IMG/VR virus record: IMGVR_UViG_3300032116_014939
Coordinates: 62,001-126,000 of that record
DNA length: 64,000 nt
Reading direction: 5' to 3' (one strand)
Notes under the pieces: generated by a model
What the model was told of the DNA's origin: nothing
Databases searched by the model: none
What the model saw: only the letters and a program-made list of their open reading frames with translations
Position numbers and translations under genes: made by a program
Shown: positions 5,789-36,777 of the stretch, one piece after another
Numbering within the stretch: the first letter of the stretch is position 1
Layout: the number at the start of each line of letters is the position of its first letter

Positions 5789-5798
5789 AGTTATATTT

Positions 5799-22300: not shown

Positions 22301-22315
22301 ATACGGTATTGCCAT
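16319..22315 (-). CDS. Giant fibre protein (1998 aa): SSGRRRLGM N-terminal domain, ~1,450-aa Gly-X-Ser/Thr repeat, C-terminal globular domain
   Basis: N-terminus is paralogous to 31651..35763. After the repeat, GTGFNTIANPADYRILTASG...AQSKLTFDG is shared with 31651..35763. Confidence 0.75.
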   Translation of the reverse strand: MAIPYQNPISASQITGPFSVARTSPYGTNFNVLNVGGWQEAAYLTNLGLSFSGKGQQQLSANTIPINITIGNGTFMPTYLTLNSDNFSSGRRRLGMIVWVNETETAYQFQIDNYNDLWDAAVSANSVTQLSYETIVKNNTPEGQAFINAWTGSTIEGVSGTSRNDARWRVFAQGTELTGGTFFSGTSTLELYNSDGTVVSVTGITVSGGDGTSGTSGSSGSAGSSGSSGTSGSSGSSGSAGTSGINGVDGASGTSGTSGSSGYSGNDGANSGRWLWTSSIVTPNDPNQGFFATNINELCSVNYISIADNDVYNINYDNWLTAIQDSINLSQEVYLQIEEVGNFPILGIYKILTIVNNGPYWDITLDIPFTCNGNLTSGSTYTFSWIHNGADGSSGSSGSSGESGSSGTSGSSGTSGSSGSAGTSGSSGTSGSSGTSGSSGSSGSSGTSGTSGSSGSSGSSGSSGSSGSSGSVGTSGTSGSSGSSGSSGSVGTSGTSGSSGSSGTSGSSGSSGSSGITGSSGTSGSSGSSGSSGSTGSSGTSGSSGSSGSSGSSGSSGSSGSSGLTGSSGTSGSAGSSGSSGSTGSSGSSGISGSSGSSGSSGLTGSSGTSGTSGSTGSSGTSGSSGTSGSTGSSGSSGSSGLTGSSGTSGSSGSSGSTGSSGSTGTSGSSGSSGSAGSSGSSGISGSSGTSGSSGSAGSSGSSGSSGSAGTSGSSGTSGSSGTSGSSGSTGSSGSSGVNGSSGTSGSTGTSGTSGSSGSSGSTGSSGSSGSSGLTGSSGTSGSSGSSGSSGSSGITGSSGTSGSSGSTGSSGSSGSAGTSGSSGSTGSSGSSGSVGTSGSSGSSGSSGSVGTSGTAGTSGSSGSAGSSGSSGSSGSVGTSGSSGLSGVDGTNGTSGTSGNSGSSGTSGTSGSSGSAGTSGSSGSSGTSGSVGTSGSSGSSGSTGSSGTSGSSGSVGTSGSSGSSGSSGSSGITGSSGTSGTSGSSGSSGSSGSSGSSGSVGTSGSSGSSGSSGSTGTSGSSGSSGSTGSSGTSGSSGSVGTSGSSGSSGSSGSSGSSGSSGSSGTSGSVGTSGSSGSSGLTGSSGTSGSSGSSGSSGSVGTSGTSGSSGSSGSSGSTGSSGTSGSSGSSGSSGLTGSSGTSGSSGSSGSVGTSGSSGSSGSVGTSGSSGSSGSSGSVGTSGSAGTSGSSGSSGSSGSTGSSGTSGSTGTSGSSGSSGSSGSSGSSGSVGTSGSSGSSGTSGSTGSSGSSGSSGTSGSSGSAGSSGSSGSTGTSGSSGSVGTSGSSGSSGSSGSSGLTGSSGTSGSSGSSGSTGSSGSSGTSGSSGSSGSSGSSGSVGTSGSAGTSGSSGTSGSSGSTGTSGSSGSSGSVGTSGSSGSSGSVGTSGSSGSSGSSGSSGLTGSSGTSGSSGSSGSSGSSGSTGTSGSTGTSGSSGSSGSSGSVGTSGSSGTSGSSGSSGSSGSSGLTGSSGTSGSSGSSGSVGTSGSSGSSGSSGTSGSSGSSGSSGSSGSSGSVGTSGSSGTSGSSGSSGSSGSSGSVGTSGSSGSSGTSGSTGSSGTSGSSGSSGSSGTSGSSGSSGSSGSSGSVGTSGSSGTSGSSGSSGSSGSSGSSGSVGTSGTSGSSGSSGSSGSSGSAGTSGTSGSSGSSGSSGSSGSSGSTGTSGSSGSSGSVGTSGSSGISGSSGTSGSSGSSGSSGSVGTSGSSGTSGSSGSSGSSGSSGSVGTSGSSGSVGTSGSSGSSGSSGTSGSSGSSGTSGSSGSSGSTGTSGSSGTSGSSGSSGSSGSSGTSGSSGSSGSSGSSGSSGSSGTSGSSGTSGSSGTSGSSGSSGSSGSSGTSGSSGSAGTSGTGFNTIANPADYRILTASGTSTNSAIAQSKLTFDGTTLGITGDTVEYGKQSLTSCSGTSITASTRICSFSTSLGRSAIFDYWVNNPTTTATRGGQVMSIWDTSNATYVDISTPDLNDSTLGIELRVTVSGGNVEFWADVNKGSWNISISTRITI
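16784..21142 (-). repeat. Coding Gly-X-Ser/Thr triplet repeat (about 480 triplets; GSS, GTS, GSV, GST, GLT)
   Basis: Directly visible. A shorter tract lies at about 21530-21690. Confidence 0.95.
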
Positions 22316-22343: not shown

Positions 22344-23549
22344 TTAGGTTTTATATACCCCTTTGAAGTAGTAATTATTTTTATCAGGAAGTTTTGGTGG
22401 TAACAATCCGTCATTAGATAAGTATAAAATTCTATATGTTCCCGCAGGTATTGAACCACCTGAGGTTATAACATCCCCAACCGAAATTTTAGGGTCAGGA
22501 GTTGCTAAAATGTCAAAGTCACAAGGTTGTGACTGATAGCCCACATTTACACTCATATTATTCAAAGTTCCTCCGACACCATCAAGTGGTATCCAAATCG
22601 TATACATGTACTGTAAACTAGTATTAATATCACTATTATTAACTTCAATAGTTTCAAATGTGTATTGGTTAATCAAACATCCAAAACTATCTTTAATCGT
22701 ACTTGGGAACTGATTTAAAGCACCTTTTAAGTTTGTAGGTTGTACAAAGTTTCCTGTTCCACCTGTAAATCCTGAGTATGATGCGTATTTGTTCATCATA
22801 TAACTGTAATTTGGACTTGTTGGTAATGGAAGCGCTCCTGAATTACCCCATCCGTACCAACTAACATTAGTGTCAGGTGTTACACCATCCGCTAAGTAAT
22901 ACATATAACTTCCTAATCCAAACAACGAACCACCTGCAGAAGAATCTTGAGGTTCTGCAAATACGTAAGCATAATACAAAGGTTTTGTAATAGATGGTGT
23001 TGGAGTAAATGTTGGTGTTGTAGTAACTGTTGGTGTAACAGTTTGTGTAACACTTGGTGTAAGAGATATTGTTGGTGTAACACTTGGGGTAATTGATGGT
23101 GTCGGTGTTGGTGTCGCTGGTAGAGCCGGCGCATTACAACATGGTCTATCAATAATGTAAGGATTATTAGTCGGATAAGAGTAAGAATTTAAACTAAAAC
23201 TACTTAAAACACTTATATATAATTTTTCAGGTAACGGTATGATAACAATCCCCTGAGATGACTGTTTTAAAAACTGAACTAAAAACTTACCTTCATTTTT
23301 TGTTTCTCTACTTGTGAATTGATAATTCACATAATAAGTAATATCTAAAGGATTTACTGTAGACGCACTTGTTGTAATATAACATTCTTTGGATGCAACA
23401 ATATATTTTTTATTAACTTCGTCATATACCGAAATTAAAATTGTATTACCCGAAATATTTTCATCTAAACCAAAATCACTTCTTCCGTTTTTTGATACCT
23501 CAACTTGGAAAACTGGTAACGTTGAATTTTTCTTAATAAACCATTCCAT
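22344..23549 (-). CDS. Fibre adaptor protein: BppU-like N-domain, Pro/Thr linker, C-domain paralogous to 35773..36777
   Basis: Start moved to MEWFIKK (23549, 1 nt after the upstream stop). N-domain resembles 23551..23919; [15 protein letters not shown] linker; YAYVFAEP...MNKY...TYRI...YFKG tail. Confidence 0.6.
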   Translation of the reverse strand: MEWFIKKNSTLPVFQVEVSKNGRSDFGLDENISGNTILISVYDEVNKKYIVASKECYITTSASTVNPLDITYYVNYQFTSRETKNEGKFLVQFLKQSSQGIVIIPLPEKLYISVLSSFSLNSYSYPTNNPYIIDRPCCNAPALPATPTPTPSITPSVTPTISLTPSVTQTVTPTVTTTPTFTPTPSITKPLYYAYVFAEPQDSSAGGSLFGLGSYMYYLADGVTPDTNVSWYGWGNSGALPLPTSPNYSYMMNKYASYSGFTGGTGNFVQPTNLKGALNQFPSTIKDSFGCLINQYTFETIEVNNSDINTSLQYMYTIWIPLDGVGGTLNNMSVNVGYQSQPCDFDILATPDPKISVGDVITSGGSIPAGTYRILYLSNDGLLPPKLPDKNNYYFKGVYKT

Positions 23550-23550
23550 A

Positions 23551-23919
23551 TTAGATAGATACGTAACTATTACCAATTTTTATCGTTAGTTTTTCTCTGA
23601 TTGGTAAAATGTAAGTTCCTGTATCAGTAATAAAAACAAACTCCCCTTCATAAAGACCTTCTCTACTTGTATCACTTGAAGTGAATTTATAATAAACATA
23701 ATATTCTGTCTCAGCGTTTGGGTCAACAAATGTCTTCTCAACAAACCCTCCTTTCTTATTCAGAATCTTATATGCTCCCGTTTTAACATCTATCATGGAA
23801 AAGTAAATCAACGAGTTTTCGATTATTGACATGAACTCTGTTATGTCAGCAATACCATCTTTAACCACTTGCATTTTAAGAACAGGTAGTGTTGCACCTT
23901 TGTTAATAAAAAATTCCAT
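23551..23919 (-). CDS. BppU-like (baseplate upper/adaptor) small protein
   Basis: FFINKGATLPVLKMQV...YKFTSSDT..EG.YEGEF....G..ILP pattern of BppU N-terminal-type domains. Confidence 0.5.
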   Translation of the reverse strand: MEFFINKGATLPVLKMQVVKDGIADITEFMSIIENSLIYFSMIDVKTGAYKILNKKGGFVEKTFVDPNAETEYYVYYKFTSSDTSREGLYEGEFVFITDTGTYILPIREKLTIKIGNSYVSI

Positions 23920-23948
23920 TAATAGTTTTTTAAATAAATATCAAAAAA

Positions 23949-25619
23949 TCAACATTCTTTCCTTAAATTACTATCATAATGTTCAAATCTATCATGTTCG
24001 GTAGGTGTGAGTAGTAAAATACCAGGTTTTAACTTACCTTTAATTGTGTTTTGGAAGTTGTGAGACATCAAAGTTTGTTCATATGGGTGTTGATATTTTG
24101 TCTCCAAATAACATTTATAACTCCCACTTTTAGAAAGAATAATTGGCCAGTTACATAAATAAATTTCCCCTGACGCATATGGAATACCCTTATGTGTTTT
24201 TATCTCGTTGAACTTTGTTTTTGGTGCGTTTGGGTCTAAACCATGTTGTGGTAATCTTGGGTTTTTTGGCCAATGTTGTTCTCTGAAATTTTGTGGGACA
24301 TTATACCAACTCCATTGTGTACTATTATCACCATAAAATTCTGTGAAATTTAATTTTAGGAAATCAAAGTTTTCTTTATTAACTATCTCTAAACTTTTCT
24401 GATATAGATTACTTACATATCTATTAAACCCATTTCTACACACTTCATTTTTTTGTGAGTAAAAAAACATGTCGTCCTCAAAAAATAACATATAGTCCAA
24501 CCCTGTTTCATCAAAATGTTCAGCAATCCATTGTCTTCCACCTGTAATACCTATATTATCTTTTTTAATATGTTCAAAATCATATTCTTTACAAAGTCTT
24601 AAATATTCTTCGGTTGTTGATAGGTCGGTTGAGTTATCCAATAAAAACTTTTTTGGTTTATCTAAAAAATCTCTATCGTATTCAATCATGGATTGAATTA
24701 ATGTTTCAAATTGTTTTGGTGAATTAAATGTTATTACATATAACGCAACTTTATCAATATCTAAATCGTTTTGGATTTTAACAAACTCTGTCTTTTTAAC
24801 TAAAACATCATCTTTTAAATTTTCGAAGAATTTTCCAAATAAACCGTTATAATCGATTTCAAAATAATTTATATATTCTTTTAACTTATAAACCATTATT
24901 GAAAATATTGATTCCTCAGTTCCCATGTACCCACTCGATAGTGTATCATTCAATAGATTATAATATTCACCATTCATCTGTGATATGGTTTCTTTCGGTC
25001 CACCAAAAAATCCTCCACGAGCAACTTTCTTTACATCATCTTCAGCCCATTCGTTAATCTTTGGGTATGAAAATCCGTGTATCTCATTATTAGCGTCATA
25101 TGGGAAACAAACGAATGTAAACTTATCAATATACTTACTTAAATTATTTAAAACCTTATCGTGTGTGAAATATCCTGGATGAACTGTATTTGTAAGTCCA
25201 GCATCAATCCAAAATAAAAACTCTGAATTAAATCTGTCAAAAATCCTTGCGTCGTTTAACAAAAACATTTTAGACATAACAAGAGGATTATACATTTCTA
25301 ATCTACCTTGTGTCGATTCTTTTAACCAACCTGATTGATTATACCATTCAGGGTTATTTCTAATTTCTTGTATCTTATTATAAAAGTCATTTTCAACAAA
25401 CCAACTCTTATCTCTTAAAATAAATTGAGTATTACTTTGGTCTCTTCTTTCCCAAACAAAATCCTCTAATTCTTTTTCACCAAAAATTATTAAGTTTTCC
25501 TCAACCTTTAATAGTTGTTCAAATTTTTCTAAATAATGTGAAAAAGAACGAGACCAACCTTCTTCAAGGTTTTCTCTACCAATATTCCACAATCCTGTAA
25601 CTAATGTAATATTACTCAT
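23949..25619 (-). CDS. Two-domain glycosyltransferase: HtrL/YibB(WlaTC)-like N-domain plus GT-A (GT2-like) C-domain
   Basis: TLVTGLWNIGR..RSF..Y, SKMFLL, WIDAG, GGFFGG and TEESI are HtrL-family hallmarks. The C-domain has LLDNS, N.GI..GR and FFEDD. Confidence 0.75.
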   Translation of the reverse strand: MSNITLVTGLWNIGRENLEEGWSRSFSHYLEKFEQLLKVEENLIIFGEKELEDFVWERRDQSNTQFILRDKSWFVENDFYNKIQEIRNNPEWYNQSGWLKESTQGRLEMYNPLVMSKMFLLNDARIFDRFNSEFLFWIDAGLTNTVHPGYFTHDKVLNNLSKYIDKFTFVCFPYDANNEIHGFSYPKINEWAEDDVKKVARGGFFGGPKETISQMNGEYYNLLNDTLSSGYMGTEESIFSIMVYKLKEYINYFEIDYNGLFGKFFENLKDDVLVKKTEFVKIQNDLDIDKVALYVITFNSPKQFETLIQSMIEYDRDFLDKPKKFLLDNSTDLSTTEEYLRLCKEYDFEHIKKDNIGITGGRQWIAEHFDETGLDYMLFFEDDMFFYSQKNEVCRNGFNRYVSNLYQKSLEIVNKENFDFLKLNFTEFYGDNSTQWSWYNVPQNFREQHWPKNPRLPQHGLDPNAPKTKFNEIKTHKGIPYASGEIYLCNWPIILSKSGSYKCYLETKYQHPYEQTLMSHNFQNTIKGKLKPGILLLTPTEHDRFEHYDSNLRKEC

Positions 25620-26179
25620 TCTGTATCTCTAACTTTATAGATTATATAATCAACAAATTCACTTTCAAACATTTGTCCTATCTCTTCATAAAAAATAACA
25701 TCTCCAAAAACATCTTCTTGAAACATCGGTAAATTATGTGTGTTTGGAATCACACCCATACATTTACCTACATTACCTCTTGTGAAATCTTTTAATTTCC
25801 AATTAACATCACCTAACCAATTGTGTTTGAATATGTATAACTTGTTTTTATCTTTAACACTTTCTTTAATTACTTTGAATGCTTCTTCAGTGTATCTATC
25901 ATCATCATCGGCAAACATTATAAAATCACCTTCTAATGAATTAATGTTCTCATTAATTAATGGATGTCCGTATTTCCACTTTTGTTCCCCTTGATTTAAT
26001 ATATGATTAACTTTGAATTTAAACTCATATCTTGATAATACTTCTGAAACAAAGTCGTGATTAATATCAGAGATTATTGTAAAAATATCTGTTGGGTCTA
26101 ATTGGTCTTTGAATGACTCAATTAATCTTGGCAGTGTTTCTCTCCCGATTGAAGTACAAACAATATTAAGACTAAACAT
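25616..26179 (-). CDS. GT2-like glycosyltransferase
   Basis: IVCTSIGRETLPRLIES start, IISD, GDFIMFADDDDRY (DxD-type motif). Confidence 0.75.
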   Translation of the reverse strand: MFSLNIVCTSIGRETLPRLIESFKDQLDPTDIFTIISDINHDFVSEVLSRYEFKFKVNHILNQGEQKWKYGHPLINENINSLEGDFIMFADDDDRYTEEAFKVIKESVKDKNKLYIFKHNWLGDVNWKLKDFTRGNVGKCMGVIPNTHNLPMFQEDVFGDVIFYEEIGQMFESEFVDYIIYKVRDTE

Positions 26180-27035
26180 AACATTTCTCCCTTACATATT
26201 TTGTTTCATCATAAATGTCTAAAATTTCTAAAAACGCTTTTTGTAAGTCTAACCAATCACCAAATTCAAAAGCGTGACATTCATCCGAATGTTTACCTGT
26301 AATAGCCGTGAGAACTTCTTGTTCACTAATAAGTTGGTTATGTGTTGTTAAGTATTGATTAAAAATGTCTAAATATCCATTTAAAATATGTCTAACTTTT
26401 TCTGATGTTCCACCGAATAGACATCCAGGAACAACCTTTAATTCAACACCAAATAGTTGATTGAATTTAGAAACTGTTTCATAGTTCATCACAATTGAAT
26501 TACCTTTCAAATGAATAAACCCGTGTTGGTTTATTTTATCAACCACCTTATCCAAAAAGTTTTTTGAATTAATTAGTGGAGCCATATAATCTCTCCACCC
26601 ATCATGACAAGACGTTCCAATCAAACCAGCATCAATCCAAAAGATATTATCACAATCATGTGATTCATCAATTAAGAATTTAAGTTTATTTAAAACAACT
26701 TCTAAATAATTGTTAACACAATAAATTCTATCATAGTTAATTCCACCCGATAATTCTTGAGTTCTAATTCTATCAATTAATTCACAAGTTTCAGAAGTAT
26801 TTAATTCTTTAAATTTAAATTCAACATTTGGAAAATTAAATTCATACTTTAAATTGAACTTATCATATGAATTTTGGTCAGTATAAATTACGTAACGATA
26901 TTCAGGATAAATTATGTTTTTAATTGTTGCAACCAATAATGAAAAATTTTTATATCTCTCACTATTAATTCCTTCAACATATTTTAATTCATAAATCGCC
27001 GAAATTATTTTAGTACCATTTGTCATGTTCTGCAT
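26172..27035 (-). CDS. HtrL/YibB-like glycosyltransferase (second copy; start may be 27026)
   Basis: KIISAIY, VIYTD, NKLKFL, IFWIDAGL, GCLFGG and SEQEVL mirror the N-domain of 23949..25619. Confidence 0.7.
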   Translation of the reverse strand: MQNMTNGTKIISAIYELKYVEGINSERYKNFSLLVATIKNIIYPEYRYVIYTDQNSYDKFNLKYEFNFPNVEFKFKELNTSETCELIDRIRTQELSGGINYDRIYCVNNYLEVVLNKLKFLIDESHDCDNIFWIDAGLIGTSCHDGWRDYMAPLINSKNFLDKVVDKINQHGFIHLKGNSIVMNYETVSKFNQLFGVELKVVPGCLFGGTSEKVRHILNGYLDIFNQYLTTHNQLISEQEVLTAITGKHSDECHAFEFGDWLDLQKAFLEILDIYDETKYVREKCYV

Positions 27036-27720
27036 ATATTATATTTGATGCTTTATAAGCATTATTTTTTATTTCAATTCCATTCAATAATGCCGAGAAA
27101 CACATCTCATCTATGTTACCAGCGGGTATGTTTCTTAAACCTTTTTCTTTTTTATATTCAATACACTTGTCCCAAGTATCTAAAAAACTATTAAACTTAT
27201 CTTCATCAATACTCAAGTATTGAATACAATCTTCAGGCATAACCTCCAACTTATCTTTATCAACCTCATGATTGAAATACTTTTCATACTCAAGTAATCG
27301 TCTACCTAATTCACTATTGGTATGAACTTGTTCGTTAAAATTATATGTTACAGGCCCTGATAAACAATTTTCATCAAACGCCCCCAAAATCTTTTCTTGA
27401 TTAAAAAAAGATGGGTTAACTCTCATATCACAATCAACTAATATGATTTTAGTAAAACCAATACTTAAAGCAGCTCTTAACGAATATCTTTTAACTGAAA
27501 AATCAAAGTCATAGTAGTTTTTAGCATACTCCAAATAATTTGGATTAAAATCATTAATGTTAAAAGTGTGGACAAATTCTTGATTATTAATCTTACTTGG
27601 GTCATCAGTAATGACAACCAAATTTGTTTTATAATCTGATTCTATGATATCACCAATAAATCTATTAACTTGGTTATAATATCTTTCACCAAAACAAAAA
27701 GTAGCAAATGTAAATTTCAT
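27010..27720 (-). CDS. Putative GT-A fold nucleotide-sugar transferase
   Basis: FATFCFGERY, VVITDDP, FDFSVKR, ILVDCD (DxD) and a late DE motif; lies inside the GT operon. Confidence 0.6.
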   Translation of the reverse strand: MKFTFATFCFGERYYNQVNRFIGDIIESDYKTNLVVITDDPSKINNQEFVHTFNINDFNPNYLEYAKNYYDFDFSVKRYSLRAALSIGFTKIILVDCDMRVNPSFFNQEKILGAFDENCLSGPVTYNFNEQVHTNSELGRRLLEYEKYFNHEVDKDKLEVMPEDCIQYLSIDEDKFNSFLDTWDKCIEYKKEKGLRNIPAGNIDEMCFSALLNGIEIKNNAYKASNIIYAEHDKWY

Positions 27721-27723
27721 ATC

Positions 27724-28968
27724 TTATAAATTTCCTGTTATTCTATCACACCATCCTTTAGATTCCGAGTGTGGCCAAACCACCCAATATTTAGGTTTTG
27801 AATCAGTTAAGAACTCTCTCCAAACTTTACAATAACCATCAGGGTCTCTTAGCATTCTATCAACTTCACCTTTATCAGCATCTTGTCTGTAAATGGTTTC
27901 ATCTAATTCATTATGGAACGCAACAACCCAAAAGTCATAATCCTTTTCAGGTACTTGAGTAAACCCAATATCAATACAATGTTTGAATACTGATGTAAAT
28001 GATTTTAACCATTCTTCTTCTGAATTGAAGTTATTTGGATTAGGTGGATAACCTTTATCTAATGTATATTGTTGAACGGCTCTCTTTGAAAAGAGTAGTC
28101 CTGAATATTTTTCATAATCTCTTAAACTTCTAACTTTACCAAAACCATATTTTCCGTGATTCATATTTTCCTCACCATCCATACCAAATAGAGAACGATT
28201 TTTCTTGTGAGCAAAATTATTCTTATCCACCCATTGTTTATCGTCGTCCCATTGTTTGGTTCTACCTTTGCGAGTATATTCATGCCAAATCAAAACTTTG
28301 TGTGGGTGGAATAAATCATATCCGTGAGTGTAAGCTCTTGCGGCAATTGAAATCTCTTCTCCGTGAAAATAAAACTCAGGGTCGTGTTGAACTTCTTTAG
28401 CGAACTTACCAAGAGTAAAACAGAAGTGAGCGGAATAAAATCTTGCGGTAACAGGTTCAGTTAGATTTTGCCAACCAGGAATTGTTTCAGGTAAAAAGAA
28501 AACCGCACCTTCAGGAATAAATCTATCAAACGCCATTCTCCACGGCTCGTTAACACGTAAACTTGGGTCATTGTCAGGGTCAAATGATGAAACATATCCT
28601 GTCAATAAAGGTTTCTTATATCCTTTCTTTTGAAGTTGTTTAATCATCTTAATCATCTCATCATCCCAATCTTCAGCAAACCTCATGTGTGAGTCAATTT
28701 GAAGAGTGTAATTTTCCTTATCATACACTTGTTGTATTTGATTTCTCGCCCAACATGCTCCTCTAGATTCATAATAAGGAATATCAATTATTCTAAATCT
28801 TTCATCATCTCTATATTCATCTAAATTATCAAAATTATCATCGCGATGATACTGACGAGCAATACCGAAAACTAAGTTTTCAGGTCGTTTAGCATTTTCT
28901 AATGCAGATTTTATAGTTGGGATTAACTGTGGGTCTCTATAAGACGCAACTTGTATAAAAATTTTCAT
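27724..28968 (-). CDS. GT60-like polypeptide alpha-N-acetylglucosaminyltransferase (Skp1-HyPro GlcNAcT / TcOGNT family)
   Basis: IFIQVASYRDP.L..TI, RPENLVFGI, SRGACWAR, LQIDSHMRF..DWD, LTGY, FYSAHFCF, FHGEEI..AAR.YT.GYD.FHP...IWHEY: the full motif series of the 'GlcNAc' GT60 family. Confidence 0.85.
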   Translation of the reverse strand: MKIFIQVASYRDPQLIPTIKSALENAKRPENLVFGIARQYHRDDNFDNLDEYRDDERFRIIDIPYYESRGACWARNQIQQVYDKENYTLQIDSHMRFAEDWDDEMIKMIKQLQKKGYKKPLLTGYVSSFDPDNDPSLRVNEPWRMAFDRFIPEGAVFFLPETIPGWQNLTEPVTARFYSAHFCFTLGKFAKEVQHDPEFYFHGEEISIAARAYTHGYDLFHPHKVLIWHEYTRKGRTKQWDDDKQWVDKNNFAHKKNRSLFGMDGEENMNHGKYGFGKVRSLRDYEKYSGLLFSKRAVQQYTLDKGYPPNPNNFNSEEEWLKSFTSVFKHCIDIGFTQVPEKDYDFWVVAFHNELDETIYRQDADKGEVDRMLRDPDGYCKVWREFLTDSKPKYWVVWPHSESKGWCDRITGNL

Positions 28969-29021
28969 GTAAACGTTTTACCCAAAATGTATTAATTTTA
29001 AATAAAAATTAAAGAAATAAA

Positions 29022-29828
29022 TTAATAAGTTTGAGCAGTTTGATATGTTTGTCTTGCAACAGTTGCAGTAAAGTTATTTACAGTATGTAGCGTAGTCCAT
29101 GTTGTTCCATTATTACTACCCGCAATAGTCCATGATTTAGGGTCTCTACTTTCAGCATCATTTGCGGTAGCCCATCTATATCCATTAAATGTTTTAGCAG
29201 TTGAGAACTGAAATATAAAATTAGTAACATTTCCGTTTGAGACAAAGTTTAAATCTAATCCTTTTGTTGCCAAATTACCATCAATTAATTTTGAGGGTTC
29301 TTCACCTACAGGATTACTACCACCAGGATTTGTAACGGTAACACCCGTCATACTTTGGTCAACACCATTTAACCTAAAAACAAATTCAGCAGCCTGTACA
29401 GCATTAGCATCAGGTGGCGATGTCTTTGTTTGAGTTATTTGCCATCTATAATAAGTAAATGAACTAACATAAGATGTCCAATATCCTGATGAGTTCAACC
29501 ATGTTTTAGCCGCGGATGCACTTGCAAATGTTTGTGGTGTTCCCGTAAAACTTGATACGTACTGAGACAAACTAATAAAGTTATTATCTGTCTTACCTGA
29601 TGTTCTCCAAAAACCAATATAAGCAGGAACTCCAACAGGATTTGGTTGTGTTCCTGATGGAACAGTATGAGCAATCACATAACCCAAATCTTCATCAGGC
29701 CCATTCCACCATCTTAAACCTGTGGATGTAAACCCACTTGTTGGTGTACCAATAGCAATACTTCCGACTTGTTCTGTCCCTGATATTGTTGAACCTGTGT
29801 TATATGCGAAGGGTCTTGATGTTGCCAT
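29022..29828 (-). CDS. Virion protein with C-terminal discoidin/F5-8 type C (CBM32-like) domain
   Basis: YYRWQIT...LIDGNLATK...GYRWATANDAESRDPKSWTIAGSNNGTTWTTL. Confidence 0.7.
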   Translation of the reverse strand: MATSRPFAYNTGSTISGTEQVGSIAIGTPTSGFTSTGLRWWNGPDEDLGYVIAHTVPSGTQPNPVGVPAYIGFWRTSGKTDNNFISLSQYVSSFTGTPQTFASASAAKTWLNSSGYWTSYVSSFTYYRWQITQTKTSPPDANAVQAAEFVFRLNGVDQSMTGVTVTNPGGSNPVGEEPSKLIDGNLATKGLDLNFVSNGNVTNFIFQFSTAKTFNGYRWATANDAESRDPKSWTIAGSNNGTTWTTLHTVNNFTATVARQTYQTAQTY

Positions 29829-29833
29829 TTTAT

Positions 29834-31651
29834 TTATAATCCATATTTTGATTTAGTATTATTATAGTTTGTTGTTACATCACTGGCGGTTAATCCTGTG
29901 GTATAAAAATAACAGGCACCTATTTTACCATTTAAATAAAGTGATGATATACCAGTACCAATGTAACCCAAATAAAGAGGGTTAGTTTCACTATATGTAT
30001 CAGTACCATGAGCGGTTGTTATATATTCGGTATTATTAATATACACTTTGGTGGTATTAGCAGTTGAGGTAATTCGTGAAACAAATGTAAATAAATACCA
30101 AGTATTAATTGAAACGGTTAACGTAGAGTCGGATATTTTTTGAACCCCCGTTCCATTTGTAACTACCCTCACAACGCCAGCATTCGAGAATAACCCACCC
30201 CAATACCCATCAAATCCAAATGAACTGGATAGTTTTCCAAAGACCGGAACTTGTTGACCTGAACTAGGTAAAACGTCAAATTTAACCCAAACTTGTATTG
30301 TTCTTTGGGTTGTAGTATTTAAACTAAGATTAGCAGTATGAGGTATACTTATTGTATTACTAGTCCCATTTAAATCAAAAATACCTCCGTCAGTAGACAA
30401 CCAAGTGGCACCATTTATAGTTGCGTTATTCCCATTCCCCGTTTCATCAGTCCAAGTACCACTAACATAATTAGTTGCATCTAACTTCATAAATAAATTA
30501 CTACTAATTACCCCACCCTCACTTGTTGATGACGGAGTAATTGTTGGTGTTGGTGTAATTGTATTTGTTGGGGTTTGTGTTGGTGTTGGAGTATTAGTTT
30601 GAGTGTTAGTAGGTGTAATTGTTGGTGTTATTGAAGGTGTTGGAGTTTGAGTATTAGTTGGAGTTGGAGTAGGTGATGGTGAAATAAATCTTGATGAAAA
30701 TGAATTAAAGTTTGTTAACACTTCTGTTGAACTTAAAACTCTATTGTAAGTCATTGCAATTGAAACTCTACCATTTAATAAATTACCTCCTGCGCCATAA
30801 GAACCAATCCTTGTAGAACCATTACCACTTACAGGTGTTTTTTGAGCAGTATATGTACTATCCTGAACACCATTAACATATAGAATGAAACCATTTGTTG
30901 TGTCAAAAGTAAGACATGCATTATACCAAACACCATTACTAAAACTTGTTGTTGAGGGATAAACACCATAATTACCCCAATTTGAGTGTCCACAGTATAA
31001 TTTATTTGAACCTGCAAAATACATAAAGTGTCCACCCGTATCGCTACTTAATAAGTTGTTATCAGCAGTTGAGTTTAGGTAAAACCAAACGTTTTTAGTA
31101 TATGCTGTTATTCCAACAGGAGTACCTGCAACGTTAACATATTGATTACTTCCGTTAAATGTAAGGTATCCATTATTACTTGAACTGAATGTCGGAGTAT
31201 TAATTAATGTTCCGTTGTTACCACTAAAACTTAAATCATCCCATCGTGAACCACTTCTTGGATATGATGAAACATAACCAGCATCAAGTAATAATGTTAA
31301 TCCATTAGTTACAATATCAGGATAATCAAGGTTAACACAAATAAGTCCTGTTTGACCTGTATACCATCCTAACGCTTCGTTAGCGGTACTAAATGTTTGA
31401 CCTGCAAATCCTTGAGTAAACCCAATAAGTTCTGAGTCGTTTTGAGCAACCACTATGGATGGTCCGGCAACAGCCTTGTTTCCATACATGGTATAACCAC
31501 CTGATGGTGGTATAATAGAATTCCAAAATCCTGTAACACTTGTTGGCCCGTATTCCGCACCTTCATTAATACCTAAAACCCAATCCTTAACTTTAATCGT
31601 ATTAGGATGAAAGGACGTTGAGTATTTTATTTTATTTGGTGGTATTGGCAT
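29834..31651 (-). CDS. Virion lectin-like protein with two LamG/ConA-like domains joined by a Pro/Thr linker
   Basis: Start moved to MPIPPNK (31651, TAATG overlap). LLLDAG..SSYP.SG..W.DLS..GNNGTL.N.PT...YNRVLS..EV..N occurs twice in variant form; TPTPTNTQTPTP linker. Confidence 0.75.
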   Translation of the reverse strand: MPIPPNKIKYSTSFHPNTIKVKDWVLGINEGAEYGPTSVTGFWNSIIPPSGGYTMYGNKAVAGPSIVVAQNDSELIGFTQGFAGQTFSTANEALGWYTGQTGLICVNLDYPDIVTNGLTLLLDAGYVSSYPRSGSRWDDLSFSGNNGTLINTPTFSSSNNGYLTFNGSNQYVNVAGTPVGITAYTKNVWFYLNSTADNNLLSSDTGGHFMYFAGSNKLYCGHSNWGNYGVYPSTTSFSNGVWYNACLTFDTTNGFILYVNGVQDSTYTAQKTPVSGNGSTRIGSYGAGGNLLNGRVSIAMTYNRVLSSTEVLTNFNSFSSRFISPSPTPTPTNTQTPTPSITPTITPTNTQTNTPTPTQTPTNTITPTPTITPSSTSEGGVISSNLFMKLDATNYVSGTWTDETGNGNNATINGATWLSTDGGIFDLNGTSNTISIPHTANLSLNTTTQRTIQVWVKFDVLPSSGQQVPVFGKLSSSFGFDGYWGGLFSNAGVVRVVTNGTGVQKISDSTLTVSINTWYLFTFVSRITSTANTTKVYINNTEYITTAHGTDTYSETNPLYLGYIGTGISSLYLNGKIGACYFYTTGLTASDVTTNYNNTKSKYGL

Positions 31652-34600
31652 TATCTTGCAACTTCTGTTATTCTTAACCACATTGATGTAGCCCCATTTA
31701 CTATTGTAATACTATCATCCGCAGAATCTCTACGACACGCAACAACTACTGATTTTGCAGTAGTGTTAGAGTTAGTATATCTTCCCGTTAATGGAAACAA
31801 TACACCACTACGATTACCATTTACAGTACTTTGTTTTGAATATGTTATTTCACTACCATCAATTTTTATTCTAGAAAAATATGAGTCATTACCTGTACCA
31901 CTAGCAAAACTATAATCCGCTAAATGATAATGTATCACTAAATAACTTGTAGAACTTAATGGTGTATAACTATAAGTAACAAAATCAGTATCCGAAGTAC
32001 TGGTAGCAATAGTTGTAGTACTAACAGTTACCTCAGTATTACTCAAAATAATATCGTTAATTACCTGACCGGCTCTCCATGCATTAGCCTTTATAAATCC
32101 TGTAAATACCACATTACCTGAAGTGTCTACGGCCATCTTTACAGCCCCACCAGTTTCATTTAATTTATTTGTGATACGAACTAACTGTCCACTTAAAACA
32201 TCAAATGAACCGTTCCAACTATCAATACCATAGTTTGAATTATTAGCATAATAAAACAAAACACCCGGAGTATCTGTACTATTATTATCAAGAATAACAT
32301 CACCAGTAGCTGACCCCGCCCTTGTAAATGTTCCGTTACCAAGAGAGGTTACACCTGTAGTACTTATATTACCAGTAATAGTCGTGGAACCAATAATTGT
32401 TGTATCACCTGTTACCGCCAGTTTAATTCCATCAAAAGTCATTTTAGCTTGAGCAACCGCAGCGTTAGCTGTTCCATCAGATGTTAATATTCTATTACTA
32501 CCCGGACTTGTAATTGTAGTAAATCCAGTACCTGATGTTCCAGCAGAACCTGAACTACCCGATGAACCTGATGTACCAGAACTACCTGACGTACCAGAGC
32601 TACCACTCGTTCCTGATGTACCCGAAGAACCTCTTGAACCTGATGTACCACTACTTCCACTTGACCCTGAAGAACCTGATGTTCCACTTATCCCATCTAA
32701 ACCACTTGTTCCCGATGAACCACCATTACCTGAGGTACCACTACTTCCTGACGTTCCTGAAGAACCCGATGAACCACTACTACCACTAGTACCTGAACTA
32801 CCCGAAGACCCTGATGTCCCACTACTTCCACTTGAGCCCGAACTTCCCGAAGAACCACTAGTTCCAGATGTACCTGAAGTTCCGTTAACACCACCTGTCT
32901 GATAATATGTATTACCACTAGTATCAACAACAACATAACGAGTATTTCCTGTTGAACTTGTAATTCCTGTAACAGTTAAACTACTTGTTGTTGTTCTACC
33001 TGAACCATTAAAATGAATTCTATCAATACCTGAACCATCTTGAATAACTAACACATTGTCGGCATCCGACGCACTACCTCTTCTAAAAGTAATTCCATCA
33101 AGAGTTGAGTTAGTTGTTATTTCTGGTTCAGATGAGTTGTTATATGCTTGTTGTAATGTAGTTGTCGCAACACCTCCCGCAGAACCTACAGTTTCACCAA
33201 ATTTTGATGCAAAAAAGAATTGAGCTTTAGATGAATCACTTAAATCAGTTGCAGTACTTACAACTGATAAAACACCAATTAAAATACCATTACTTGTAAA
33301 ATTACTAAACGTATTAAATTGTTCAGTTGCAAGACCAGCGATTGCTGCAGATAACTGATTATATTCTGTTTGACCATATTGAACTCTAAATTGACCATTT
33401 TGAACCAAATAAATTCTTTGGTTGGTTGCCTTTGTTCCTGTAAGAGGAGTAACAACTCCACCAACATCATAATTTAACGGGTCAATAAATGTTGTATTTG
33501 ATGCGGTACCACCTGTTTGTGTTCGATATTGAAAAGTACAAGGACTTGTACCTGTAACATATAACGCGTTTGGAGTTAGTGTACTTGACGCAAAATTAAT
33601 ACCTAAACCATAAAGATATCCTGCACTTGTATTAAAACTTAAATTAACACCATTAGCTGACGGATATATTCCACCATTTATAAGATTAATAGGAACAAAC
33701 ATGTCCCTGAGTTGAGCTAATGGAGATAGTACAAAATCAGGTTGACTGAACGCGTTAATAATATTTGTTTTGTTTGCATGACCTAATTTACCTAAAAATA
33801 TATTTTGTCTTCTTTGTTGTTCCGTTAGTTCAATATTTGATTGAGCAATAGTCGACCCACTTGTAAGATATACCCAAGTCTCAGTATCAGTATTAACATA
33901 TATTGCAGTATGAGTACCACCACTATAATCAACATAATAGATTTGAGGACTTAATGGATTTGTTGTATCATCAACTATCCACCCTTTAACAGGTGCAACT
34001 CTAAACGTTGTTGTGGATACAATTGATAATCCTGTAAATACAAATACACCTGTTGAGTTATTAACAGTACTTCTATCTTGTCCTAAAATTACCCATTGAG
34101 AACCATTACTCACAAGTTGTGCGGCGTTTGTTTCACTTAGAATTAATAAAGTTTTATCGTCAATCTTTTCACTCCCATAGGGTAGAATAGTTACCGCACC
34201 TCCACCATTATTTTTGATAGCTAATAGTCGACCTTGAATACCAACTGCGGTTGGTAATTGTACATTAAAGGTACCACCAGTAATGTCCACCATATAATCT
34301 GAAGGTGTAATATTATATGTACTAGTAACGGTTTTTTGAGGAAATGTGATACCACCTGTAGATGTTATCCCACTAGTCTGAGTTAAACCTGTAACAGTTA
34401 AAGTACTAGCGGTTAATCCGCTTGTAAAATAAGTATTACCATAAACAGTTCCACCAGTTAATGGTAAGTAATCACCACTAACACCTCCACCACCTGGTAT
34501 GGTAACTGTAACCGCAGGACCTCCTGTTGCATTAACACCTGAGCCAACAAAATCAATAGATGTTACCCCTGATGTTAATAAACTACCTTCGTTATAAATC

Positions 34601-35763
34601 GATATAGCGTTTCCTGATATACCACTACTTCCTGAACTACCAGAAGAACCCGGAGAACCTGTTGGACCTGAAGTACCCGATGTACCAGAACTTCCTGATG
34701 ACCCACTACTACCTGATGAACCTGAACTACCATTTGTACCAGTACCTCCACCTCCACCATTAACAGGAATAACTGTAACAATCAAAGAAGGGATTGCCGG
34801 ATGTAACGCAGTTGCCGCCTGAGCATATAAAGATATATTAGTATTATCTGTCGCCCACATTAATTCAACATATGTTCCAGCGGTAACTGTAACCAAGAAG
34901 TCCCAAGCCGCAACAACATATCTATTATTAGTTTGAACTGTAACTTGAGTATCAGTATAAGGAACGTCAACACCATTTTGCCTTAACCATATATCAACAT
35001 CTTCACCCGAACCACCACCTCCATTATTACTTAATTGAACTGAAAATTGGATGTCATATGTTCCCGCACTTGCGAAAGTAATCTGACTACCCGAAACAAT
35101 TGTGATACCACTAGCCTCAGCGACACTATTTAACCTCATTGGATAAGCGGTATTAATCAAAGAAGCGGTTTGTCCTGAAGTATCATAGAATGAACCATAA
35201 GCATTCGCTCCCGTAACACCACCTGACGAACCCGTTACAAACTTTCTCCATACCGCAGTAGTATATGTTGCCCCACTAACATCTTCAATAGTGTTAGCCG
35301 TCCAAGAATTAATAAACGACTGACCCGCAGCCGTTTTATTATTTATTGTTGTTCCAAAATTAGAAACCTGAGCACATCCCGTACTAGCAGTCGCAGCATT
35401 AAATAACGTCTCGTAATCATTAATATGGTATTGATAAACTTGGTCAACCTCATAAACATAAGCCAACATACCAAGTCGTCTTCTACCTGATGAGATGTTA
35501 TCTGAAGCCAAAGTAATTACATCAGGTGACCAAGCATCTCCCGTTCCTTTTGTAAACTCAATAGGAATAGTATTACCCGAATATTCAATACTTCCCGTGG
35601 TACCTGATGGTATTGTATAATAGAGGTCAGATAAACTGAACACCTCCATGTAACCACCCGTATTATTAACACTGAAAGTAGTACCATACGTATTGTTTCT
35701 TGGTACAGTTTGTGTTCCATTTGCTTGGATAGATGATATTGGGTTTTTATATGGGAAACTCAT
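31651..35763 (-). CDS. Fibre protein (1370 aa) with short Gly-X-Ser repeats; mosaic of the modules in both giant fibres
   Basis: SSGRRRLGM N-domain, LPTAVG..G....IKNNG module, GSS/GTS tracts at about 32530-32885 and 34620-34740, RILTSDG..AQAKMTFDG. Confidence 0.7.
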   Translation of the reverse strand: MSFPYKNPISSIQANGTQTVPRNNTYGTTFSVNNTGGYMEVFSLSDLYYTIPSGTTGSIEYSGNTIPIEFTKGTGDAWSPDVITLASDNISSGRRRLGMLAYVYEVDQVYQYHINDYETLFNAATASTGCAQVSNFGTTINNKTAAGQSFINSWTANTIEDVSGATYTTAVWRKFVTGSSGGVTGANAYGSFYDTSGQTASLINTAYPMRLNSVAEASGITIVSGSQITFASAGTYDIQFSVQLSNNGGGGSGEDVDIWLRQNGVDVPYTDTQVTVQTNNRYVVAAWDFLVTVTAGTYVELMWATDNTNISLYAQAATALHPAIPSLIVTVIPVNGGGGGTGTNGSSGSSGSSGSSGSSGTSGTSGPTGSPGSSGSSGSSGISGNAISIYNEGSLLTSGVTSIDFVGSGVNATGGPAVTVTIPGGGGVSGDYLPLTGGTVYGNTYFTSGLTASTLTVTGLTQTSGITSTGGITFPQKTVTSTYNITPSDYMVDITGGTFNVQLPTAVGIQGRLLAIKNNGGGAVTILPYGSEKIDDKTLLILSETNAAQLVSNGSQWVILGQDRSTVNNSTGVFVFTGLSIVSTTTFRVAPVKGWIVDDTTNPLSPQIYYVDYSGGTHTAIYVNTDTETWVYLTSGSTIAQSNIELTEQQRRQNIFLGKLGHANKTNIINAFSQPDFVLSPLAQLRDMFVPINLINGGIYPSANGVNLSFNTSAGYLYGLGINFASSTLTPNALYVTGTSPCTFQYRTQTGGTASNTTFIDPLNYDVGGVVTPLTGTKATNQRIYLVQNGQFRVQYGQTEYNQLSAAIAGLATEQFNTFSNFTSNGILIGVLSVVSTATDLSDSSKAQFFFASKFGETVGSAGGVATTTLQQAYNNSSEPEITTNSTLDGITFRRGSASDADNVLVIQDGSGIDRIHFNGSGRTTTSSLTVTGITSSTGNTRYVVVDTSGNTYYQTGGVNGTSGTSGTSGSSGSSGSSGSSGTSGSSGSSGTSGSSGSSGSSGTSGSSGTSGNGGSSGTSGLDGISGTSGSSGSSGSSGTSGSRGSSGTSGTSGSSGTSGSSGTSGSSGSSGSAGTSGTGFTTITSPGSNRILTSDGTANAAVAQAKMTFDGIKLAVTGDTTIIGSTTITGNISTTGVTSLGNGTFTRAGSATGDVILDNNSTDTPGVLFYYANNSNYGIDSWNGSFDVLSGQLVRITNKLNETGGAVKMAVDTSGNVVFTGFIKANAWRAGQVINDIILSNTEVTVSTTTIATSTSDTDFVTYSYTPLSSTSYLVIHYHLADYSFASGTGNDSYFSRIKIDGSEITYSKQSTVNGNRSGVLFPLTGRYTNSNTTAKSVVVACRRDSADDSITIVNGATSMWLRITEVAR

Positions 35764-35772
35764 TTACTATAA

Positions 35773-36777
35773 TTATATATCAACCTTACTTCCTCTAAAA
35801 TAAAGGTCGTAAGTATTATCCAATTCAAATGTATTTGATGGGTATGTAGTATAAACTCTATAAGTTGTTTTTGCAATAGTATTACCCGTATAAGTAAATG
35901 TATTAGTATAAATTGTCGGTTCCATCTTTACACTTGTAAAGACATTTGGATTTACAATTCCTAAATCAATCTCAATCTGATATTGGTTATTTGTTAAATT
36001 AGTCGGTATTATCCAAGTGTACCATGCTTTACATCCAATAGTATTTTCAGGTACTTTAACTGTTGGGAAATTATATCGAATATACGGATTACCATATGTA
36101 TCAAATCCCCCACTTGTTCCTGGCACAATTTGTTTTATAATACTTGGAAACAATCCTGTTGTCCATCCCGAAAAATTAACATATTTATTCATGTCCAAAT
36201 CAAATGTACTCGCTGAACTACTCGGTTGTGTAGTATTTGTAAACCCATAAAAACTTGAGCCAAGTGAGTTCATGTATGAACCAATACTTGATGAACCTGA
36301 ATACGGTTCAATGAATAAATAAGCGTAAATAGGAGTTTCAGGTGTCACAGTTGGAGTAGGGGTTCTTGTAACAGTTGGAGTAATTGTCTGAGTTGGGGTA
36401 TGAGATGGTGTAACTGTTTGTGTAGGTGTAATACTTGGTGTTATACTCGGTGTCGGTGTAAATGATGGAGTGATACTTGGTGTTGGAGTATTTGACGGAG
36501 TTAAAGAAATTGTTGGAGTAACACTTGGAGTAATACTTGGTGTTGGTGTTGGTGTTACACATATATATTCTTGTGTAAAAACACATCCTGTTGAATCAAC
36601 TATTTTAATTAAAACTTTTGGTGCCGATGAATATGGACTCGGAATATTAAAACTAACAGATGGTGGAATATAATCATATATAGTTGTCACAGTTTGACAA
36701 GAATATTGAAATATATCACAAACTGAAATAACATAAGGAGGTGTTCCTCCCAAACTATCTATTGTTACTAAACTCAT
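35773..36777 (-). CDS. Fibre adaptor protein with Cys N-domain and Pro/Thr linker
   Basis: [21 protein letters not shown] linker near-identical to the one in 22344..23549; paralogous C-domain. Confidence 0.6.

Follow-up and report, generated by a model that had tools for sequence, protein, structure and literature searches.

A GT60-family glycosyltransferase in the fibre module of a jumbo phage: a candidate initiator of mucin-type O-glycans on threonine-proline linkers

What would a bacteriophage do with a glycosyltransferase (GT) of family GT60, and what would that enzyme glycosylate? The question is raised by a gene on the minus strand of a 64,000-nucleotide stretch of DNA, bases 62001-126000 of the 242,064-bp virus record IMGVR_UViG_3300032116_014939 in IMG/VR, which is estimated to be 82% complete. 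We refer to this whole stretch as the window. The gene opens an island of sugar-enzyme genes set among genes for fibre proteins, and its product is, on balance, probably a soluble initiator of mucin-type O-glycans on the linkers of the phage's own fibres. Elsewhere the window encodes a baseplate wedge protein (52146-54017), ribonucleotide reductase and a DnaB-type helicase, and its jumbo-phage origin is sound. A megablast search of the 12 kb around the GT60 gene against GenBank phages returned zero matches. The gene and the two domains of its product are as follows.

27724..28968, minus strand: GT60-family (PF11397) glycosyltransferase, 414 amino acids (aa), soluble, first gene of the sugar-enzyme island (PF11397 profile, fold)
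28093..28968, minus strand: GT-A catalytic domain, residues 1-292 (SYRD, GACWAR, DSH at nt 28687-28695, GEE, invariant H229)
27727..27993, minus strand: C-terminal beta-sandwich resembling fibronectin type III (FN3), residues ~326-414, preceded by a short helical linker, residues 293-325 (model)

The open reading frame (ORF) starts with ATG. The catalytic motifs that an initial annotation of the window had called intact are all in place, with SYRD at residues 9-12, GACWAR at 70-75, DSH at 92-94 and GEE at 203-205; the further motifs CIDIG, WVVWPHS and KGWC lie at 331-335, 395-401 and 404-407. The protein matches Pfam PF11397 'Glycosyltransferase (GlcNAc)', a family built around Dictyostelium Gnt1 (CAZy GT60), with an E-value of 2.7e-68 and 231 bits against a 21-bit cut-off, which for a profile comparison is far beyond chance. 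Taken with the phage genes named above, this match bears out the reading of a GT60 enzyme in a bacteriophage. PF11397 is the sole Pfam match of the protein, and all homologues listed by a word-indexed search carry it. Twelve positions (Q39, R75, D92, H94, F97, W101, D102, F184, E204, E205, G216 and H229) are invariant in 44-46 aligned homologues sharing 34-81% identity, and this invariance indicates that the DxH metal motif, the acidic GEE and the distal His are under selection. Judged by these residues, the enzyme looks active. Its hydropathy (Kyte-Doolittle, 19-residue) peaks at 0.76. The type II N-terminal membrane anchor that is a trait of Golgi GT60 enzymes is missing from the 414-aa protein, which begins directly with the beta1 strand, and no membrane-spanning hydrophobic segment occurs in any of the five island proteins.

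The fold points to enzymes that act on polypeptides. An AlphaFold2 model built from 44 sequences has a Rossmann-like beta/alpha core, with a mean pLDDT of 96.2 and a pTM of 0.91. Among Swiss-Prot models its top match is Dictyostelium Gnt1 (Q8T1C6; E 7.3e-26, 25% identity, residues 2-321), and the next 29 matches are all polypeptide N-acetylgalactosaminyltransferases (ppGalNAc-Ts) of family GT27. In a structure search of the PDB, ranks 1-45 are occupied by ppGalNAc-Ts of human, mouse, fly and Toxoplasma (E ~1e-10), the best being GalNAc-T2, T4, T1 and TgGalNAc-T3, and TarS and GlfT2 rank only below them. A sequence search of the PDB with the 414-aa protein detected nothing. The initial annotation had related the enzyme to the ppGalNAc-Ts and had named an unrelated GT2 enzyme acting on lipids or polysaccharide as the best match that would speak against its assignment. 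The relation is upheld by the structural ranking, in which Gnt1 and then GT27 come first and no lipid or polysaccharide GT2 does. Membership of GT27 itself was rejected, as the phage enzyme has no ricin domain and PF11397 is its only Pfam match.

The PF11397 match stops at residue 292 and the structural match to Gnt1 at 321, leaving a C-terminal part that had been described as an extension of ~80 residues, with a structure prediction proposed for it. The extension is real but longer than that: residues ~326-414 form a separate seven-strand beta-sandwich, which reaches a pLDDT of 96 when modelled alone. Foldseek with the isolated domain found nothing significant in the PDB, so the FN3-like assignment derives solely from VIA-align, which returned a uniform list of fibronectin type III domains with Z up to 7.6, rated borderline by the tool. 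A ricin-type lectin identity was rejected, the domain being FN3-like with zero lectin matches. The domain is not peculiar to this phage. Many of the best 150 representatives at 50% identity are ~400-430 aa long and align over residues 2-413, while others consist of the catalytic domain alone or place it within multi-domain giants. Substrate recognition by the modelled FN3-like domain is possible.

If the enzyme acts on proteins, the genes around it are the obvious place to look for an acceptor. From 22344 to 36777 every gene is on the minus strand, and those flanking the island include several proteins with linkers rich in proline and threonine (PT linkers).

35773..36777, minus strand: PT-linker (~75 residues) protein, 334 aa, candidate acceptor
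31651..35763, minus strand: fibre protein, 1370 aa, with collagen-like G-S/T-S/T triplet runs (PF01391, E 1.3e-19)
29834..31681, minus strand: protein with two LamG-like domains, 615 aa, with a 51-residue (T-P-T-x)n linker (residues 334-384, nt 30530-30682), candidate acceptor (PF13385, E 4.7e-26)
29022..29828, minus strand: F5/8 type C (discoidin-like) protein, 268 aa, directly upstream of the GT60 gene (below the Pfam cut-off; PHROG tail protein)
23551..23919, minus strand: 122-aa protein, conserved directly downstream of the island (in 68/80 related loci, after the HtrL gene)
22344..23576, minus strand: fibre-type protein with a PT linker (residues ~150-195), candidate acceptor

Five proteins with threonine-proline (TP) linkers are encoded in the 242-kb record; three of them are no more than 8 kb away from the island, and a fourth is found shortly beyond the edge of the window. 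The last protein of the list, 410 aa long, has a TTG start that is probably too early, given an ATG 9 codons downstream. The 122-aa protein before it is paralogous to its N-terminal ~120 residues, and small domains of this type may serve as attachment modules for variable fibre heads.

We observed the same neighbourhood in 80 related IMG/VR loci (L007-L086), whose GT60 proteins are 70-98% identical to that of the window. A PT-linker gene lies within 10 kb in 73 of the 80. Of 67 related loci, 48 have a gene for a (T-P-T-x)n-linker protein, 156 to 1,653 aa long, as the immediate same-strand neighbour upstream of GT60. Because the best BLAST matches to the 410-aa gene were often just its ~125-aa N-terminal paralogue, homology counts were replaced by counts based on position. 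Over 63 distinct loci, the density of PT-linker genes upstream of GT60 stands at 75 per 100 kb in the first kilobase, and none lie more than 7 kb away; on the downstream side, past the HtrL gene that closes the island, the first kilobase has 27 per 100 kb and the stretch beyond it at most ~2.

Collagen-like proteins were considered as the conserved partner and rejected, since they occur in 4/80 related loci, against 73/80 for PT-linker proteins. The window itself holds three giant fibre proteins of this kind, of 2636, 1998 and 1370 aa (8258-16168, 16319-22315 and 31651-35763, all minus strand), which consist largely of proline-free collagen-like G-S/T-S/T triplets. Their Ser content goes up to 41% and their Gly content to 27%, and G-X-Y continues without a break for 15-45 triplets at a time. 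At these repeats the local GC content is 0.44-0.49, as against ~0.29 in the GT island, and the repeats create long spurious ORFs on the opposite strand (8304-12923 and 16773-21158). The collagen-like giants could be further targets of O-glycosylation.

Bacterial genomes offer more independent evidence than the phage context does. For this comparison we took the best 80 of at least 554 loci in the GTDB species-genome collection, which come from many phyla. In the first kilobase around the GT60 homologue there are 17 ORFs rich in PT or ST, a density of 11.5 per 100 kb; the flanks at 1-8 kb have 21, or 2.7 per 100 kb, which is about four times sparser. The closest cellular homologues, 61-68% identical, belong to a Saprospiraceae genome (locus L089:6504-7649(-)), a Bacteroidia genome (locus L091:2148-3412(-)) and a Lewinellaceae genome (locus L093:5997-7751(-)). 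Chromosomal genes were confirmed on L089 and L093, one carrying UvrB, NIF3, OmpA and NAD kinase genes and the other genes for a response regulator, CorA and an aminotransferase. In all three the GT60 gene is followed by an ORF of ~540-610 aa, which matches HtrL_YibB in the two that were scanned (L089 and L093). The pair faces a divergent gene whose product combines a twin-arginine-type signal with long mucin-like repeats, for example (SPTPTTSVSPSNSI)n, and a C-terminal region common to the three. This protein has a sorting domain of the type IX secretion system (T9SS; PF18962) in L089 (E 1.2e-7) and a sub-threshold match in L093 (E 0.0021, 18.8 vs 27 bits). L089 adds a sulfotransferase gene, and in L093 a 2-oxoglutarate-Fe(II) oxygenase gene (5374-6000; PF13640, E 1e-6, 30 bits vs a 27-bit cut-off) adjoins the mucin-like gene and the GT60/HtrL pair.

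Signals for twin-arginine translocation (Tat) recur well outside the Bacteroidota. Among 16 directly adjacent PT-rich proteins that were inspected, 8 begin with an RRxF/L-type signal. At five loci from Alphaproteobacteria, Acidimicrobiia, Vicinamibacterales and Ectothiorhodospiraceae (L131, L135, L136, L138 and L159), the neighbour of GT60 is a small protein in which a Tat-type signal (RRxF...) is followed by (PTPT)n repeats. In four Gemmatimonadota loci (L097, L100, L102 and L104) the neighbour has instead a PqqD-type N-terminal sequence fused to a PT-rich tail; a PF05402 scan places L097 above and L104 just under the cut-off. Since Tat exports folded proteins, the pairing of a cytoplasmic GT with Tat-type substrates is coherent, and these sequences suggest cytoplasmic glycosylation before Tat export. 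The genomic context in both phages and bacteria thus points to PT/ST-rich proteins, in keeping with the protein acceptors that had been proposed for the enzyme.

The island itself has a conserved frame. Between the GT60 gene and the fibre genes downstream of it lie four further genes.

27010..27720, minus strand: protein without a family match, 236 aa, variable island part; weakly similar to ORF331 of Xanthomonas phage XacN1
26172..27035, minus strand: protein without a family match, 287 aa; weakly similar to XacN1 ORF332; in 30/80 related loci
25616..26179, minus strand: GT2-like glycosyltransferase, 187 aa, variable island part (PF00535, E 8.8e-5, just under the cut-off; NCBIfam PglI-like, weak)
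23949..25619, minus strand: enzyme with an HtrL_YibB N-terminal and a GT-A/GT2-like C-terminal part, 556 aa, conserved last island gene (PF09612, E 2.7e-13)

The 556-aa enzyme (HtrL+GT2) is 42% identical to XacN1 ORF330 and belongs to an Atlas cluster of 3,145 members, 99% of them viral. In 76/80 related phage loci a homologue of it lies after the GT60 gene, on the same strand. The gap between the two genes ranges from 4 bp to 7.2 kb and holds 0-7 variable genes, for a total of 231 ORFs in 59 clusters. Pfam matches in the gap include FkbM and other methyltransferases, GT10 fucosyltransferases, GT25, GT7C and PLOD-type GT domains, a DegT aminotransferase, a carbamoyltransferase and a GNAT acetyltransferase. 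As the gap is just 4-113 bp in two loci, GT60 and HtrL alone make up the minimal unit. Elsewhere the filling differs: the cassette of XacN1 and Xoo-sp13 consists of GT60, a carbamoyltransferase, two small genes weakly like the 287- and 236-aa genes, and ORF330, and a Tara Oceans contig carries two GT60 copies, a methyltransferase, a sulfotransferase-like gene and the HtrL enzyme. The unit therefore has two conserved ends, a presumed initiator and a presumed two-domain extender, with a hypervariable tailoring set between them, the architecture expected for a diversifying surface glycan.

We propose the following course of events. Late in infection, the soluble, cytoplasmic, metal-dependent GT60 enzyme would bind a divalent metal through D92, H94 and H229 and draw on a host UDP-sugar; UDP-N-acetylglucosamine (UDP-GlcNAc), with alpha-GlcNAc transfer, would be expected by family analogy. 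It would place the first sugar on Thr/Ser of the extended (T-P-T-x)n linkers that the phage's own fibre proteins carry. Further sugars would next be added by the HtrL+GT2 enzyme, whose gene closes the island, and the variable genes would decorate the glycan, in relatives by methyl-, fucosyl-, galactosyl-, carbamoyl-, sulfo- and acetyl-transferases. As a result, the fibres would carry a coat of glycans that differs from strain to strain. Donor and acceptor in this scheme come from analogy and gene neighbourhood, and we infer the order of action and the biological role as well. More broadly, we put forward as a tentative idea, somewhat short of even, that GT60-FN3 and HtrL+GT2 constitute an unrecognised, widespread prokaryotic system for cytoplasmic mucin-type glycosylation. 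In bacteria it would act on TP/SP-repeat proteins, followed by Tat export and, in Bacteroidota, onward passage through the T9SS; in a large jumbo-phage clade with probably Saprospiraceae-like hosts, the same pair would work with hypervariable tailoring enzymes to give strain-specific glycans on fibre linkers.

Several observations weigh against the proposal that the phage enzyme initiates glycans on fibre linkers. The related phage loci come from a single clade and do not count as independent cases, and the island sits inside a fibre module, where PT linkers are common anyway; for these two reasons the phage context alone is suggestive only. The HtrL_YibB family of the conserved partner is linked to lipopolysaccharide (LPS)-core loci. 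Some bacterial homologues keep other company: a distant Tunturiibacter copy lies beside a GT9 heptosyltransferase and an HldE-like gene, a Sphingobacterium copy beside a C39-peptidase ABC exporter, and seven Burkholderiales copies (L109, L130, L143, L151, L153, L158 and L165) inside core clusters of the type VI secretion system (T6SS). These clusters contain TssE, TssF, TssG, TssA and VgrG, with a fimbrial/MrkD-like gene directly upstream of GT60, and we know of no described role for GT60 in T6SS. No biochemical characterisation of a PF11397 protein from a prokaryote or a phage is known to us. The glycoprotein bands reported from XacN1 virions were never assigned to specific proteins or to its GT60 homologue, ORF334 (PMC5852040). 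Finally, a complex prediction of the GT60 enzyme with Mn and a 61-residue PT linker of the 615-aa neighbour returned 0.00, which is no answer and is used here neither way.

What else might the island do? It could work on the cytoplasmic side of the inner membrane and remodel the host's LPS or lipooligosaccharide (LOS) core or some other glycan of the envelope, with GT60 acting on a glycolipid; the purpose could be a superinfection block, or keeping progeny from adsorbing to debris. Beyond the HtrL_YibB partner and the Tunturiibacter locus, this reading can draw on a GT9-like ORF328 in the XacN1 region, on the JGI name of relatives, 'glycosyltransferase involved in cell wall biosynthesis', and on the interpretation by Iyer et al. 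2021 of jumbo-phage GT clusters as surface-polysaccharide modifiers (PMC7824862). The lack of transmembrane helices does not exclude it, since core assembly also employs soluble GTs. We nevertheless regard an envelope acceptor as unlikely: the nearest structures are all polypeptide GTs, genes for PT-rich proteins are enriched right beside GT60 in many bacterial phyla as well as in phages, the closest cellular loci pair GT60 with a mucin-like secreted protein, and the island genes of the window include zero Kdo, heptose, lipid A-core or lipid-linked-sugar genes. Very improbable, in our view, is that the enzyme modifies host proteins, as a takeover factor or effector, or glycosylates the bases of phage DNA. 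The T6SS-linked copies might hint at an effector, but they form a single lineage and mostly consist of the catalytic domain without the C-terminal one. The 556-aa neighbour has weak matches to TAGT and to beta-glucosyl-HMC glucosyltransferases, and for the large myovirus YerA41 a bulky modification of the DNA, probably by oligosaccharides, has been proposed (PMC9023294); the TAGT and PHROG matches are, however, sub-threshold and cover generic GT-A parts only, and no ThyA-type pyrimidine hydroxymethylase was found in the 242-kb record. The island, moreover, is part of the late structural module and has fibre genes, not early genes, around it.

A protein acceptor leaves the choice of residue. 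In Gnt1, the best named structural relative, the target is hydroxyproline (Hyp) in Skp1, and the prolines that make up about one third of the phage linkers could be hydroxylated first by a prolyl 4-hydroxylase (P4H) of the host. The oxygenase gene of the Lewinellaceae locus fits this route, and chlorophyte fusions of P4H with PF11397 exist. The initial annotation had seen no prolyl hydroxylase in the window; this extends to the 242-kb record at its 82% completeness, in which the profiles PF13640, PF13759 and PF03171 find no match, and phmmer with the Lewinellaceae oxygenase as query drew a blank both in the phage record and in all the other loci retrieved. The protist GT60 enzymes of mucin type that have been characterised, moreover, act on Thr/Ser (PMC8724618). 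Initiation on Hyp is thus quite unlikely, but to say outright that the evidence favours Ser/Thr, as the annotation had, overstates it when Gnt1 acts on Hyp and one close bacterial locus carries a P4H-type gene.

Comparison with known systems brings out what is particular to the proposed initiation on fibre linkers by this enzyme. With Gnt1 it shares the Pfam family, the best structural match, a soluble cytoplasmic nature and the DxH metal motif. In Dictyostelium a two-domain diglycosyltransferase acts after Gnt1, and the HtrL+GT2 enzyme occupies that place in the phage. The phage differs in having neither Skp1 nor, across the three profile searches of the record, a prolyl hydroxylase; its enzyme is phage-encoded and has the extra FN3-like domain, and its likely acceptors are long TP-repeat linkers in place of a single Hyp. 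The protist Golgi polypeptide alpha-GlcNAc-transferases (Dictyostelium GntB, Trypanosoma cruzi OGNTs) share the GT60 family and the proposed chemistry. Dictyostelium PsA has PTVT-type repeats that resemble the phage linkers. The Golgi enzymes are type II membrane proteins, whereas the phage enzyme has no transmembrane segment and carries the FN3-like domain. Protist GT60 enzymes start mucin-type O-glycans on Thr/Ser-rich repeats (PMC8724618). The GT27 enzymes, next in structural rank, have a GT-A core with DxH and a distal His and likewise place an accessory domain after the catalytic one. That domain is a ricin-type beta-trefoil lectin where the phage has an FN3-like sandwich, identity is only 11-16%, and animal ppGalNAc-T clusters carry PF00535, PF02709 and PF00652 where the phage protein has PF11397 only. 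Relative to characterised GT60 enzymes, then, this one is prokaryotic-viral and soluble without a P4H or Skp1 partner, and it is distinguished by the FN3-like domain and the HtrL+GT2 partner.

The logic of the proposed system is familiar from elsewhere. GtfA/GtfB, which act on serine-rich repeat proteins, and HMW1C are soluble cytoplasmic GTs that modify repeat-rich surface proteins before export or assembly, and chlorovirus PBCV-1 and mycobacteriophages are examples of virus-encoded virion glycosylation. With such adhesin and virion systems the phage would share GT genes beside their substrates and variable glycans; the enzymes themselves come from unrelated families (GT4/GT8/GT41-like and others), none of them GT60. 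Phage virion-glycosylation systems have GT genes in the structural module, which is true here; a virion glycan has been seen only as the staining of XacN1 with the periodic acid-Schiff (PAS) reagent (PMC5852040). XacN1 provides the nearest isolated counterpart. Its ORF334 is 47% identical over the full length including the C-terminal domain, and its cassette ends in the HtrL-type ORF330 and adjoins baseplate genes and a giant PT-linker protein (ORF325, 3,313 aa, five genes from the island). The middle genes, with a carbamoyltransferase in XacN1, the host and the phage lineage all differ.

How unusual is such a gene in a phage? The initial annotation had expected an active phage copy to be an unusual initiator of protein O-glycosylation, but the gene is not unusual: both bacteria and phage metagenomes abound in PF11397 proteins built in the same way, and these have already been annotated automatically. 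Of 8,000 candidates in the word-indexed search, 7,332 proteins matched at E<=1e-5; the top 120 are 78-99% identical and 414-417 aa long, on contigs of up to 294 kb. An exhaustive search of 50%-identity clusters gave 4,551 matches at E<=1e-3, of which 897 reach E<=1e-30. At least 576 loci with a GT60 homologue are present in IMG/VR, alongside the at least 554 homologues in the GTDB collection, and ESM Atlas clusters of PF11397 proteins of similar length are 80-97% Uroviricota. PHROG 24687, 'glycosyltransferase', matches the 414-aa protein end to end (E 7.6e-171), and a BFVD/UniProt entry named 'Glycosyltransferase, GlcNAc [uncultured Caudovirales phage]' already exists, with relatives in Megaviridae and Pandoravirus. 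Full-length homologues at 44-47% identity are found in four isolated phages, XacN1 and Xoo-sp13 of Xanthomonas and CM1 and RAS14 of Stenotrophomonas. The GT60-family gene is thus neither rare nor unannotated in phages.

A literature search on GT60 or Gnt1 together with phage yielded incidental mentions only. The XacN1 paper named ORF334 a glycosyltransferase and reported two PAS-stained glycoprotein bands in virions, and its authors proposed in 2018 that ORF328 and ORF334 make the virion glycoproteins (PMC5852040). A role in virion glycosylation has therefore already been suggested for this homologue; family, acceptor and island architecture were not assigned in that work. New here are the island with its conserved frame and hypervariable core, its tight flanking by genes for TP-linker fibre proteins, and the link across bacterial phyla between GT60 and PT-repeat proteins, many of them with Tat-like signals, which together make for a specific acceptor hypothesis that is directly testable. 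Most of the GT60-family sequences found here are phage or bacterial, whereas the characterised enzymes are, to our knowledge, all eukaryotic. If the proposed function is right, it would be one of the rare documented cases of phage-encoded protein glycosylation, the first by a GT60 enzyme, and would explain why environmental phages so commonly have threonine-proline linkers in their fibre proteins. It would also bring to light a hypervariable layer of glycans on the virion, which could affect host range, stability and recognition. The bacterial loci, for their part, suggest a testable link of cytoplasmic glycosylation to Tat export, and a small soluble cassette of this kind could serve as a tool for glyco-engineering.

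Gene junctions within the island are tight or overlapping. No intrinsic-terminator-like sites were found between 22 and 32 kb on either strand, where 3.7 +/- 2.0 were expected, and a promoter scan, which gave 54 sites where 54.6 were expected, was uninformative. One long late transcript may span the fibre genes and the GT island, and the absence of terminators fits weakly with this.

Two further groups of genes in the window deserve mention. Three tandem paralogues of ~295 aa and ~30% glycine lie at 4910-5788, 5799-6686 and 6699-7607 (minus strand); the first, which was scanned, matches Gly_rich_2 (PF21722, E 4.7e-10), and all three end in a conserved G(L/M)V(I/V)(V/I)(T/Q)CW tail. A 726-aa protein at 36805-38985 (minus strand) carries SprB repeats (PF13573, E 2.9e-16), which are typical of Bacteroidota gliding adhesins. 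Together with the closest cellular GT60 homologues, these repeats hint at a Bacteroidota (Saprospiraceae-like) host.

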